The position numbers and the translations under genes are program-made. A stretch of DNA of 64,000 bases from Mobula hypostoma (lineage: Eukaryota), in assembly GCF_963921235.1 (NCBI RefSeq), contig NC_086107.1, positions 111,662,001-111,726,000 on the forward strand, read 5' to 3'. This document shows, in pieces, positions 48,721-62,107 of this stretch. The notes under the pieces were generated by a model. That model ran no database searches. It worked only from the letters and a program-made list of their open reading frames with translations, and was not told the DNA's origin. Positions within the stretch are counted from its first letter, which is position 1; each line of letters starts with the position of its first letter.

Positions 48721-48972
48721 ATGGGGAGCTTGTGGCGAGCGTGGCCGGCTGTGGCGGTGGGCTTGTTCCCGAAACGGGGCTTGCCCTGTCGCCTCCAGTG
48801 CAGGGTTGGCCCGCCGCTCTGGACCGAGGGGCGGGGGCAGCCCCGGAGGGCAGCTCAGTGCGGGCAGAGCCACGGTCACTCGGTGCGCCAGAACTATTCC
48901 AGGGAGTGCGAGGAGGCGATCAACCAGCAGATCAATCAGGAGCTCAGCGCTTTCTACGTCTACCTGTCCATG
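48721..48972 (+). CDS. Ferritin E (226 aa, putative mitochondrial ferritin) exon 1 with 50-aa N-terminal extension
   Basis: MGSLWRAWPAVAVGLFPKRGLPCRLQCRVGPPLWTEGRGQPRRAAQCGQS-HGHSVRQNYSRECEEAINQQINQELSAFYVYLSM, then GTGAGA donor. Confidence 0.9.
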
Positions 48973-49025
48973 GTGAGAGAGAAGACAGGTTCTCACTCCC
49001 CAGCGGGGTGGTCACAGACTCCCGG

Positions 49026-49415
49026 CCCAGCAGGGAGAACTAGACTGTCTTAACACATCTTCTGAAAAAATCCCAGCAGCGAGAACCAGACCTCATTAAT
49101 TTGAACACATTTCCCTAAATACCAGCAAGAGAACTAGACAGTCTCACCACACTTCCCGAATACCAGCAGAGAAACAGGACCTCCTAATTTGAACACATTT
49201 CCGAATACCAGTAGGGAGAACGAGAATGTCTTACCACATTTTCTGAAAAGTCCTAGCAGGGAGAACCAGACCTCATAATTTCAACATACTTCCCGAATAC
49301 CAGCAGGAAGAACTAGACAATCTTATCACATTTACTGAAAGATACCAGCAGAGAAAACAGGACCTCATAATTTGACCATAGTTCCCGAGCACCAGCAGGG
49401 AAAACCTGACCATCC
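49026..49415 (+). repeat. Minisatellite, ~45-bp units alternating A/B (about 9 units)
   Basis: Units begin (A/C)CCAGCAGRGARAAC; alternate TAGAC.GTCTT.CAC and CAGACCTCATAATTTGAAC. Confidence 0.8.
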
Positions 49416-49595
49416 CAGTAAAGAGACTGGACACGTTCCACTTAACAAAATCCACCAATGTACATTATATCCCGGTAGGGAAACCGTCACACACCAGCAG
49501 GAATATCCAGCATAGCCCACGTAGAGCCATAAATCACGACCTAGAAGCAGGCCCTTCAGCCGGTCTAGTACATGCCAAACAATCACCAGGTTATT

Positions 49596-50057
49596 CTGGT
49601 GAACGCAGCAGGCCAAGCAGCATCTCTAGGAAGAGGTACAGTCGACGTTTCAGGCCGAGACCCTTCGTCAGGACTAACTGAAGGAAGAGTGAGTAAGGGA
49701 TTTGAAAGCTGGAGGGGGAGGGGAAGATGCAAAATGATAGGAGAAGACAGGAGGGGGAGGGATAGAGCCGAGAGCTGGACAGGTGATAGGCAAAAGGGGA
49801 TATTTTGCCTATCACCTGTCCAGCTCTCGGCTCTATCCCTCCCCCTCCTGTCTTCTCCTATCATTTTGCATCTCCCCCTCCCCCTCCAGCTTTCAAATCC
49901 CTTACTCACTCTTCCTTCAGTTAGTCCTGACGAAGGGTCTCGGCCTGAAACGTCGACTGTACCTCTTCCTAGAGATGCTGCTTGGCCTGCTGCGTTCACC
50001 AGCAACTTTGATGTATGTTGCTTGAATTTCCAGCATCTGCAGAATTCCTGTTGTTTG
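49596..50057. mobile_element. PLE-derived palindromic insertion in ferritin E intron 1
   Basis: Arms 49596-49795 and 49803-50002, 7-nt spacer; direct repeat ACCAGGTTATTCTG at 49585-49598 and 50058-50071. Confidence 0.85.
49923..49958 (+). ncRNA. Minimal type I hammerhead ribozyme motif (PLE-associated)
   Basis: Helix I AGTC/GACT, core CTGACGA, stem II GGGT(CTCG)GCCT, GAAA, palindromic ACGT helix III, GUC site. Confidence 0.65.
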
Positions 50058-58585: not shown

Positions 58586-59849
58586 TTATTGATATTCATC
58601 TTAAGGTTAAAATATACTGGTCTCATCCCCAAGTGAGCAAACTGCACCTTGGAATTTATGTAGATTTTTTTTTAATTCTAGCGTCTGGCAAAATATCAAA
58701 TAAAATTTTGCACCAAACCACATATTAGGACAGAACCATCAAAGTGTGTTTCTTTCGATCATAGGGATTTTGGTTCAAAGCCCACTGAATTTACAGGCAA
58801 TTTTGGTTTATTTTTGCACAAATTGGGATAGAGCCCAGTTTTATATTTAATAAATAAAATTACATTAGCAATATTTATATATTCAAAGATCCAGTTGGAA
58901 CTTCAATGTTTTGTAACTCTCCATAAATATATTTATGTGTAGCAGGATATCAATACCTTAAATTTCATCTGAGTAGCCTCCAACCTCATGGCATGAATAC
59001 TGATTTCTCCCTTCTGTAAAAGAGATTTATTCCCCATTCTGATCTTTTACCTCTTCTCACCTGCCTATCACTTCTACCTGGGTCCCCTCCTCCTCCCCTT
59101 TCTCTGTGGTGCACTTTCTTCTCCTATCAAATTCCTTCTTTACCAGTCCTTTACCTTTCCTACCCACCTGCCATCACAAATCACCCTCCAGCTAGCCTCC
59201 TTTCCCTCCCTTCAACTTTTTATTGTTGCATCTCCCCCCCCCCACCACTTCCTACTCAGTCCCGAAGAAGGTCTTTGCTCAAAACGTTGACTGTTAATTC
59301 GTTTCCATAGCTCCTGCTATGAGTTCTTTCAGCATTTTGCGTGTGTTACTTTGGATTTCCAGCGTTTGCAGATTTTCTCATGTTTATGAAAAAGTTTATA
59401 CTTTTTGATCAGTAGATGGCTCTCTTACACATAGAAATTAATAGAAGCTAAAAGTGTTTGGATGTAATATCTTTCAGATGAGATGTGCACAGAAACTGTC
59501 AGACCAAATGCTTTTAAAGGGTAAGTATAGCTAGATGGTCAGCCAAAACACGTTGGGCCAAAGGACCATTTTCTGTGCCGTATGAATCTGAGATGACCAG
59601 AAGCTCAGTCGAGCTGTCCTTTAAGGAACATACTAAGAGTAGTAGAGGGAGAAAGATTTGAAAATAAATACATTCTTAAGGACAAATAAAGGCACATTAA
59701 CACTGATAGATAGTGATTAAAATCAGAGGAGTGCCAGTGAGAGATATCAGAAAAAGATTGCTTATACAGAGGTTCAGAGACATGATAACCAATCTGATTT
59801 GTGAGAAGTTTAGAACTTGAAATTTGTCTCACCATTCTTCTTCAAACTT

Positions 59850-61818
59850 GGATGAGTATGCTGCATTAAAACCTGTGTGGATGAGTGTGTGCCTACAAAG
59901 ACCTACTATACATTCCCAAACCAAAAGCCATGGATGAACCAGGAGGTACATTGTCTGCTGAAGGCTAGATCTGTGGCATTCAACTCTGGCGACCCAGGCC
60001 TGTACCAGAAAACAGGTATGATTTGTGGAGGGCTATTTCAAGGGCAAAAAGGCAATTTCAAATGAGGCTGGAGGCGACATTAGATGCGTGACAACTCTGG
60101 CAGGGTTTGCAAGACATTACTTCTTACAAAGTAAAACCCGATAGCATGAATGGCAGTGATACTTCATTACCAGATGAACTCAACGCCTTCTATGCCCGCT
60201 TTGAAAGGGAGAACACAACTACAGCTGTGAAGATCCCTGCTGCACCTGATAACCCTGTGATCTCTGTTTCAGAGGCCTACGTTAGGCTGTGTTTAAAGAG
60301 AGTGAACCTTTGCAAGGCAGAAGGTCCCAATGGAGTACCTGGTAAGGCTCTGAAAACCTATGCCAACCAACTGGCCGGAGTATTCAAGGACATTTTCAAC
60401 CTCTCACTGCTACGGGTGGAAGTTCCCACTTGCTTCAAAAAGGCAACAATTTTACCAGTACCTAAGAAGAATAATGTGAGTTGCCTTGATGACTGTCGCC
60501 CGGTAGCACTCACATCTACAGTGATAAAATGCTTTGAGAAGTTTGTCATGACCAGACTGAACTCCTGCCTCAGCAAGAACCTGGACCCATTGCAATTTGC
60601 TGAACGCCACAATAGATCAACAGCAGATGCAATCTTAACTGCTTTAGACCACCTGGGCAACACAAACACCTATGTCAGGATACGATCATTCCCACAATCC
60701 TGATTGAGAAGTTGCAGAACCTGGGCCTCTGTACCTCCCTCTGCAATTGGATCCTCAACTTCCTAACTGGAGGACCACAATCTGTGCGGATTGGTGATAA
60801 CATCTCCTCCTCGTTGACTATCAACACTGATGCGGTTCAGGCGTTTGTGCTTAGCCCACTGCTCTACTCTCTAGATACCCATGACTGTGTGACTAGGCAT
60901 AGCTCAAATACCACCTATAAATTTGCTGATGATACGACTATTGTTGGTAGAATCTCAGATGGAGACGACACAGCGCACAGGAGTGAGATATGCCAACTAG
61001 TGGAGTGGTGTCGCAGCAACAAGATTGCACTCAACGTCAGTAAGACGAAAGAGCTGATTGTGGACTTCCAGAAGGGTAAGAAGAAGGAACACACACCCAT
61101 CCTCTTAGAGGGATCAGAAGTGGAGAGAGTGAGCAGTTTCAAGTTTCTGGGTGTCAAGATCTCTGAGGAGCTAACCTGGTCCCAACATATCGATGCAGTT
61201 GTAAAGAAGGCTGTTATACTTCATTAGGAGCTTGAGGAGATTTGCTATGTCAACAAATACACTCAAAAACTTCTATAGATGTACCATGGAGAGCATTCTG
61301 ACAGGCTGCATCACTCTCTGGTATGGAGGGGGTGAGGGGCTACTGCACAGGACCAAAAGAAGCTGCAGAGGATTGTAAATTTAGTCAGCTCCATCTTGGG
61401 TACTAGCCTACAAAGTACCCAGGGCATCTTCAGGGAGCAGTGTCTCAGAAAGGCAGCATCCATTAGTAAGGACCTCCAGCACCCAGGGCATGCCCTTTTC
61501 TCACTGTTACCATCAGGTAGGAGGTACAGAAGCCTGAAGGCACACACTCAGCGATTCAGGAATAGCTTCTTCCCTTCTGCCATCTAATTCCTAAATGGAT
61601 ATTGAATCTTTGGACACTACCTCACTTTTTTTTTAATTATAGAGATTTTTGTTTTTGCATGTTTATTTTAAATCTATTCAATATACATAATTGATTTACT
61701 TGTTTATTTATTATTATTATATTTTCCTCTGCTAGATTATGTATTGCATTGAACTACTGCTGCTAAGTTAACAAATTTCACATCACATGCCGGTGATAAT
61801 AAACCTGATTCTGATTCA
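59850..61818 (+). mobile_element. Rex1/Babar LINE (RT region to 3' tail) in ferritin E intron 3
   Basis: [52 protein letters not shown]; AATAAACCTGATTCTGATTC tail. Confidence 0.9.
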
Positions 61819-61951
61819 GTCAAAAGAGCAGTGATTGATACTCCTAACAGTCATAGCATGTGGTGGTTTTGGAGTTTGTGTTTCCCGTGTTGGATGAATT
61901 AAGCGATGATGTTGAGAAACTCCTCATGGTTACGTTTTCTTCCTGTTACAG

Positions 61952-62107
61952 CTATGCGAGTTCTTGGAGGCAAACTACTTGAATGAACAAGTCATAGCCA
62001 TTAAGAAGCTTGGGGATCACATAACCAACCTGAAGAAATTGGGAGCTCCTGAGGATGGTATGGGAGAGTACCTGTTCGACAAGCACTCTCTGGGTGGGGA
62101 CAGTTAA
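61952..62107 (+). CDS. Ferritin E exon 4
   Basis: ACAG|[51 protein letters not shown] (absent from the ORF track). Confidence 0.95.

Follow-up and report, generated by a model that had tools for sequence, protein, structure and literature searches.

An intron-containing H-type ferritin of sharks and rays with an arginine-rich N-terminal extension, a candidate mitochondrial presequence

A 64,000-nucleotide stretch of the Mobula hypostoma genome (contig NC_086107.1, positions 111,662,001 to 111,726,000 of the forward strand; hereafter the window, to which all coordinates refer) contains a cluster of ferritin genes. One of them, referred to here as the N-extended gene (48721-62107), encodes an intact H-type ferritin, predicted from its retained ligands to be ferroxidase-competent, with 50 residues in front of the position where the neighbouring paralogs A and B start. 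At somewhat better than even chances, this extension is most likely a cleavable mitochondrial matrix-targeting presequence, because the leader is basic with hardly any acidic residues, is modelled as disordered and shows poor sequence conservation. We infer mitochondrial import from this composition together with a conserved Arg-Arg (RR) motif. The N-extended gene is an old, conserved and expressed elasmobranch gene, which is not confined to Mobula. It has already been modelled by RefSeq under a generic name; the novelty lies in how its leader is interpreted. The gene is composed of the following parts:

48721-48972, plus strand: exon 1, with AG/GT borders, encoding 84 amino acids and followed by the donor GTGAGA

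48721..48870, plus strand: first 50 codons of exon 1, encoding the N-terminal extension, a candidate mitochondrial presequence (net charge +7; RRAA at residues 42-45)

48871..48972, plus strand: remainder of exon 1, the start of the ferritin domain and helix A with E27 and Y34

54321..54467, plus strand: exon 2, with AG/GT borders, helix B with E61, E62 and H65

55675..55800, plus strand: exon 3, with AG/GT borders, a loop and helix C with E107

61952..62107, plus strand: exon 4, helices D and E with Q141, E131 and E134, with the TAA stop at its end

62301..62361, plus strand: two poly(A)-signal hexamers, at 62301 and 62356, which fit the 3′ untranslated region (UTR) of about 210 nt of the longest RNA contig (X1, see below)

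The open reading frame (ORF) comprises 681 nt (226 amino acids and TAA), and its product is letter for letter identical to RefSeq XP_062918964.1, 'ferritin heavy chain-like isoform X1 [Mobula hypostoma]', with one residue different in the RefSeq ortholog from M. birostris. The exon coordinates, the AG/GT borders and the RefSeq identity bear out a preliminary description of this DNA, made from the sequence alone, in which the gene was presented as an intact four-exon ferritin of 226 residues. Its exon borders coincide, codon by codon, with those of paralogs A and B, resulting in four exons and three conserved intron positions. As that description had also claimed, exon 1 encodes 84 amino acids compared to 34 in both paralogs, and the 50 extra residues carry, in addition to RRAA, seven Arg (positions 6, 19, 24, 28, 38, 42 and 43), one Lys (18) and a single acidic residue (E36), an agreement that holds residue by residue. 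His51 aligns with the start Met of paralogs A and B, and the only in-frame ATG codons of exon 1 are the one at 48721 and its final codon (M84), which confirms the earlier claim that a His occupies the normal start position and that no AUG-initiated short form exists. The frame 5′ of the ATG at 48721 closes after 16 codons and contains no Met.

The protein matches Pfam family PF00210 over residues 65-204 with 123 bits (cut-off 24.5), and no Pfam match was found over residues 1-56. It shares 66-69% sequence identity with FTH1 and 61% with paralog A. All seven ferroxidase ligands (E27, Y34, E61, E62, H65, E107 and Q141 in human H numbering) are kept in the window protein, as stated in the preliminary description, and they are invariant across the clade of N-extended proteins in a 13-species alignment; the three-fold channel residues E131 and E134 are also kept. 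The AlphaFold model of the Hemitrygon ortholog (92% identical) has helices at residues 61-88, 93-122, 143-170, 174-204 and 212-218, corresponding to a four-helix bundle and a short E helix, and the best fold matches of the N-extended ferritin model are ferritins. Codon 102 (54360-54362) encodes Cys (AKFC) in Mobula, whereas Tyr (AKFY) is invariant in all 13 aligned orthologs. The RNA contigs show no differing letter at this codon, so the Tyr to Cys change is real, and M. birostris also has Cys.

A phmmer search with exon 1 against 1.8 billion representative sequences revealed only two proteins matching the leader, both from elasmobranchs. Homolog and profile searches identified N-extended orthologs in at least 15 shark and ray species, all annotated only as 'ferritin heavy chain(-like)'. 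The batoid orthologs are from Mobula (two species), Hypanus, Hemitrygon, Pristis, Narcine, Rhinoraja and Leucoraja, and those from sharks are from Scyliorhinus (two species), Mustelus, Rhincodon, Chiloscyllium, Cetorhinus, Heptranchias and Pristiophorus. In the profile search, members of this clade scored at least 379 bits and all other sequences 334 bits or less, save tandem-fusion gene models, and no chimaera or bony-vertebrate protein scored like a clade member. The mature ferritin domains are strongly conserved across the clade, while the leaders align poorly and are 24-60 residues long. Nearly every ortholog begins with MGS(L/R)W, and the canonical start position is never occupied by Met. 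In the five species for which DNA was examined, no in-frame Met precedes the conserved ATG, and exon 1 is followed by the same donor, GTGAGA. Conservation of the frame in related species was a question raised with the preliminary description; from the conserved first ATG, the extension is kept in frame through many indels in all 15 elasmobranch species examined.

Another N-extended match from the exon-1 search (P0009/L006) was rejected as an ortholog, being a divergent ferritin on an AT-rich contig with short introns. This unrelated protein (L006, 2003-3315; 34% G+C contig, run SRR10825163) has an N-terminal extension of its own of about 45 residues; the source organism is probably an invertebrate, and the protein may be another organelle-targeted ferritin.

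The leaders of the 15 species contain 6 acidic and 116 basic residues out of 723, compared to 443 acidic and 298 basic residues out of 2610 in the mature parts. Their net charge ranges from +4 to +9 with no or one acidic residue per species, and 12 of the 15 have an RR motif roughly 10 residues from the C-terminal end of the leader. In the AlphaFold model of the Hemitrygon ortholog, the predicted local distance difference test score (pLDDT) of residues 1-55 stays under 50 and the ferritin bundle that comes next is modelled confidently, which suggests that the leader is disordered.

Transcription of the gene was observed in two species. In four M. hypostoma RNA runs, a contig joins 48971/2 to 54320/1 (GT..AG) and covers the ATG with no differing letter. 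These contigs start at 48527 (X3), ~48475 (X2) and ~48263 (X1, 237 nt beyond 48500), that is, 190 to ~460 nt 5′ of the ATG, and the length of the X1 contig (1350 nt) fits four exons and a 3′ UTR of ~210 nt. The contigs are unstranded with flat depth, and depths of 3-10 indicate presence only. From the little skate (Leucoraja), a transcript contig of 945 nt (L002) contains the complete ORF of a 216-residue ortholog. It starts with an oligonucleotide, which we take to be the SMART template-switch adapter, followed by 13-15 nt of genomic 5′ UTR and the ATG, and ends with a Nextera adapter. With the template-switch oligonucleotide 13-15 nt before the ATG, at least some skate mRNAs therefore start just 5′ of the conserved ATG. 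A transcription start downstream of 48721, which the preliminary description had named as fatal to its proposal, was found neither in Mobula nor in skate.

Several observations weigh against the presequence. The exon has a G+C content of 70-78%, which alone favours Arg, Gly, Pro and Ala, and for this reason the other two frames of the same DNA were used as a control for composition driven by G+C. Acidic residues number 2 of 219 in the coding frame against 13 and 17 in the other two (Fisher p 4e-4), and basic residues 36 against 27 and 19. Stops are rare in all three frames of exon 1, so an open frame counts for little by itself, unlike the bias in charge seen in the real frame. In the leaders, the maximal helical hydrophobic moment does not exceed that of shuffled sequences (z −1.0 to +1.4), and an amphipathic helix is therefore not evident; Gly and Pro make up about one quarter of the extension. 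Several sharks have an uncharged N-terminus of 17-18 residues that is rich in Leu (LLPGLLLGL) and that a signal-peptide predictor might score. Some Mobula RNA contigs start 190-460 nt upstream and take in three upstream ATGs (48484, 48608 and 48648), and part of this long upstream RNA, the contigs being unstranded, may belong to another transcript. Finally, paralogs A and B are, like the N-extended gene (see below), without a detectable iron-responsive element (IRE), and its absence thus does not single out the latter.

Given this base composition, the extension might be an untranslated 5′ leader that is open by chance, in front of a decaying gene copy with no usable start. Although the exon is G+C-rich and its three frames are nearly stop-free, we regard this as extremely unlikely: 15 species share the first ATG and have preserved the frame across many indels, acidic residues are depleted in the coding frame alone, the mature domain is highly conserved with invariant catalytic residues over the shark-ray divergence, and spliced mRNA is present in two species.

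The Leu-rich start of the shark leaders would also be compatible with an endoplasmic reticulum signal peptide formed by the first ~20 residues, making the protein a secreted or vesicular ferritin of the insect kind with the Arg-rich remainder as a propeptide or mature N-terminus. Residues 4-16 of the shark proteins are indeed uncharged and rich in Leu (LLPGLLLGL, LLPGLWLGL), with VWPAVAVGLF as the batoid equivalent. However, the hydrophobicity of this stretch is modest (Kyte-Doolittle maxima of 1.4-2.4 over 8 residues and 1.05-1.9 over 12), and it is broken by Pro and Gly. Moreover, most species have it in a weak form, but it is deleted in Leucoraja, as confirmed by mRNA, and weak in Narcine. 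A modest stretch that the skate has lost speaks against an obligatory signal peptide, which in addition would not explain the next 30-45 residues without acidic residues. We therefore consider secretion improbable.

More weight attaches, while still unlikely, to the possibility that the extension is translated and not removed. The product would then be a cytosolic or nuclear ferritin with 24 outward cationic disordered tails rich in Gly, Arg and Gln, used for nuclear import or for binding nucleic acids or membranes, comparable to the N-terminal nuclear localization signal (NLS) of avian ferritoid. The disorder of the extension in the model and the absence of an amphipathic signal above shuffles are in line with this, as are RG- or RGG-like runs in several sharks, such as RRGRQGQRGG in Heptranchias and GRGRGQ in Cetorhinus, and the well-known location of ferritin N-termini on the outer surface of the shell. 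On the other hand, the leader is very poorly conserved and varies from 24 to 60 residues, which is typical of targeting peptides and not of binding modules, most species have no classical NLS rich in Lys and Arg, and acidic residues are almost entirely excluded along the full leader, which is the hallmark of presequences. That the leader stays on the assembled shell, wholly or as a dual-localised fraction, producing a 24-mer coated with 24 Arg/Gly-rich cationic tails, seems to us rather doubtful. If true, such tails could anchor iron storage to nucleic acids, membranes or condensates, one example being a nuclear or RNA-associated ferritin. We know of no description of a catalytically intact ferritin with retained cationic disordered tails.

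Two further ideas about the leader were tried. N-myristoylation of the conserved Gly2 was rejected, as many species have Arg at residue 6 and so do not preserve the motif. In the ESM-Atlas, the look-alikes of residues 1-60 and of residues 1-50 were exclusively from ferritin-like di-iron families (COQ7, AOX and rubrerythrin; scores up to 0.78), and they were set aside as targeting evidence because the embedding evidently reflects the whole protein.

For the favoured mitochondrial presequence, the following route can be proposed. The original start codon was presumably lost, and translation from the upstream ATG would add 24-60 N-terminal residues to the ferritin. The precursor would be imported via TOM/TIM23 and cut by the processing peptidase, under its well-established R-2 rule, near the conserved RR(A/G) motif, leaving an N-terminus of about the length of a cytosolic H chain. 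The processed subunits would then assemble in the matrix as a 24-mer iron store.

The region 5′ of the gene was searched for elements of iron regulation and transcriptional control. No IRE was detected by Rfam at the gathering score in the whole 64-kb window or at E-values up to 10 in 48200-49000, and a scan by hand revealed no proper C-bulge/CAGUGN hairpin near the N-extended gene. The CAGTGC at 48796 in the coding leader was rejected as an IRE, since it has no closing pair and no lower stem and is not conserved in skate. Likewise, Rfam at permissive E-values gave no IRE match in the 5′ region of paralog A (13300-13950). The only IRE-like hairpin near this paralog, at 13416, is weak, with a C bulge and four of five pairs. 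Control of the N-extended gene by iron regulatory proteins (IRPs) seems unlikely because no IRE was found, and the elasmobranch cluster ferritins of the window may escape IRP control. Three promoter elements were identified, including motifs that resemble those for YY1 and for the translation initiator of short 5′ UTR (TISU):

48255..48264, plus strand: YY1-like motif AAAATGGCGA, near the 5′ end of the longest RNA contig (X1)

48605..48614, plus strand: YY1/TISU-like motif AAGATGGCGG, whose ATG (48608) opens an out-of-frame upstream ORF of 28 codons

48673..48677, plus strand: CCAAT box in a skate-conserved block CCAAYCAGGGRCCGTGTTGYGAG, 44-48 nt 5′ of the ATG

The consensus AAVATGGCGR has only two matches in the 64 kb (48255 and 48605, with 0.27 expected by chance), both 5′ of the N-extended gene and, in contrast to its neighbours, nowhere else in the window. 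Clusters of YY1/TISU-like motifs are located ~100-500 nt 5′ of the ATG at all four orthologous loci (Leucoraja, Heptranchias, Rhincodon and Narcine). Human FTMT has been reported to be IRE-independent and activated by YY1 (PMC7760355). The combination of YY1-like motifs and no IRE thus offers a parallel with FTMT, but not proof.

Some details of these 5′ regions differ between species. In the skate promoter (L001, 9500-9940), AAGATGGCGGCCG and its reverse complement occur seven times as a palindromic array (for example, CCAAACATGGCGGCCGCCATGTTTGG); this array is an expansion of the YY1-like site. In Mobula, the upstream ORF (48608-48695; 28 codons, out of frame) stops 25 nt short of the main ATG. 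The Rhinoraja stretch homologous to this ORF is in frame, giving a RefSeq isoform of 275 residues. It is the DNA motif of this region that is conserved and not the peptide.

With respect to origin, the ferritin cluster of the window was mapped by tblastn using one of its own ferritins. It includes, in addition to the N-extended gene:

13838-15889: paralog A, a ferritin gene

25781-29894, plus strand: paralog B, with an intact ORF of 174 amino acids

37038-37163, plus strand: ferritin exon remnant with in-frame stops

38952-39017, 40006-40068 and 43462-43590, minus strand: ferritin exon remnants with in-frame stops

The N-extended gene is located amid other ferritin genes in six species (M. hypostoma, Hemitrygon, S. 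torazame, Leucoraja, Heptranchias and Rhincodon). A maximum-likelihood tree was built from 63 ferritins, FTMT not among them. In this tree, the N-extended proteins form one clade (100/100) with the batoids together inside it, separate both from the FTH1 clade of skate, chimaera and bony vertebrates (99/96) and from the elasmobranch cluster clade containing paralogs A and B (100/100). The order of the five deep gnathostome ferritin lineages is without resolution in the tree. In the approximately unbiased (AU) test, a grouping of the N-extended clade with mammalian FTH1 was rejected (p 0.003), and a grouping with the cluster ferritins was not (p 0.43). FTMT is reported to carry the hallmarks of a processed copy of FTH1 and to be more than 75% identical to H ferritin (PMC7760355). 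Since the clade falls outside FTH1, grouping with FTH1 is rejected and FTMT is described as an FTH1 copy, an origin separate from FTMT is supported by a tree that covers FTH1 and not FTMT itself.

Comparison of the proteins themselves gave no sign of a special closeness to FTMT. Among Swiss-Prot fold matches, the N-extended protein is 52% identical to human FTMT (239 aligned residues, with the leader) and 67-69% identical to FTH (169 residues); the first 60 matches in the PDB are all H chains. Long mammalian matches annotated as 'ferritin heavy chain(-like)' or 'mitochondrial-like' were rejected as FTMT, as they represent FTH1 with a translated 5′ UTR. In principle, the two could share an origin in an ancient jawed-vertebrate mitochondrial ferritin, with FTMT as a retrocopy of a bony-vertebrate ortholog that was lost. 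Room for this is left by the unsettled deep branching among the five lineages and by the absence of FTMT from the tree, and the Swiss-Prot FTMT is the top fold match, because both proteins have long N-terminal extensions. Against a common ancestor stand the high identity of FTMT to H ferritin and its hallmarks of a processed copy (PMC7760355), the profile search with no clade member outside elasmobranchs, the exon-1 phmmer search with no similarity to the FTMT presequence, the AU rejection of mammalian FTH1 and an identity to FTMT that gives no hint of a closer relation than to FTH, and we hold it to be very unlikely.

Thus, the N-extended gene appears to have arisen by duplication in the elasmobranch ferritin cluster and 5′ extension of exon 1, before the split of sharks and rays. 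This agrees with the independent origin by tandem duplication and exon-1 extension put forward in the preliminary description, as far as the introns, the tandem cluster and the position of the clade outside FTH1 (p 0.003) are concerned.

Other members of the cluster show signs of decay. An intact divergent ferritin gene occupies the place of the minus-strand remnants, 5′ of the N-extended gene, in Heptranchias, Rhincodon and S. torazame, and hence a neighbour has decayed in Mobula. Paralog B has the longest end branch of the tree (0.38) and carries the replacements E62K, H65R, E64K, E67K, H118Y, D131S and E134A. It looks like an expressed or decaying ferritin with neither ferroxidase nor channel function. 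Two RefSeq isoforms, Mobula X2 (P0176, 200 aa) and Pristis X3 (P0125, 173 aa), depart from the four-exon structure. One of them reads beyond the exon-3 donor, losing helices D and E, and the other, which has an alternative first exon, is missing the leader as well as helix A; neither would work as a ferritin. Intron 1 contains the following repeat at its start, right after exon 1:

49027..49405, no strand assigned: 92-bp tandem repeat, 4.2 copies

It is followed at 49500-51500 by an interspersed repeat, a very abundant, transcribed family whose k-mers add up to contig depths of 10^4-10^5 across the RNA runs.

Among known ferritins, the N-extended protein resembles FTH1 and paralogs A and B in fold, exon structure and, leaving aside the replacements in paralog B, catalytic residues, but these start at the canonical Met, where it has His preceded by 50 extra residues. 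With mammalian FTMT it shares the H-type sequence with all ferroxidase ligands, the absence of an IRE and YY1-type promoter motifs (for FTMT, PMC7760355). Both have a long N-terminal extension, of ~50-60 residues in FTMT, that is rich in Arg and poor in acidic residues. In contrast to FTMT, which is an intron-less processed FTH1 copy with proven import, the N-extended gene has three introns, a place in a tandem cluster and an elasmobranch clade outside FTH1, its product is a candidate for import, and the two leaders have no similarity detectable by phmmer with exon 1. Drosophila Fer3HCH and the plant ferritins are independent examples of ferritins that gained an N-terminal transit peptide, in lineages and with leaders unrelated to the N-extended gene. 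Plant ferritins also have an extension peptide, which directs them mainly to plastids. Avian ferritoid, a ferritin-like protein, has gained a basic N-terminal signal that relocates ferritin to another compartment; however, this signal is an NLS of the simian virus 40 (SV40) type and ferritin function has been lost, whereas the N-extended protein has kept its ferroxidase site and has no clear NLS. The secreted ferritins of insects also have a hydrophobic N-terminal leader on the ferritin subunit, but theirs are short true signal peptides, and the hydrophobic part of the N-extended leader is weak, not conserved and followed by a long Arg-rich stretch.

To our knowledge, non-mammalian vertebrates are generally treated as having no mitochondrial ferritin. 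Full-text literature searches returned nothing on mitochondrial ferritin of elasmobranchs or other non-mammalian vertebrates and no paper on the N-extended gene, in accord with the preliminary description, whose author knew of no characterised one in this lineage. The lineages with mitochondrial ferritin listed in a review are mammals, insects and plants (PMC7760355). If mitochondrial import is confirmed, cartilaginous fishes would have solved the same problem as mammals by duplicating a gene in a tandem cluster, giving up its old start codon and turning upstream sequence into a presequence, a solution kept since the common ancestor of sharks and rays. This would be a clean case of convergent organelle retargeting and a natural experiment on the birth of a presequence from 5′ leader DNA, and it would provide a handle on mitochondrial iron handling in elasmobranchs. 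Thus, the N-extended gene probably, though by no means certainly as regards mitochondria, represents an organelle-targeted H ferritin that arose by a route other than the mammalian one, a case of convergence rather than a new principle.

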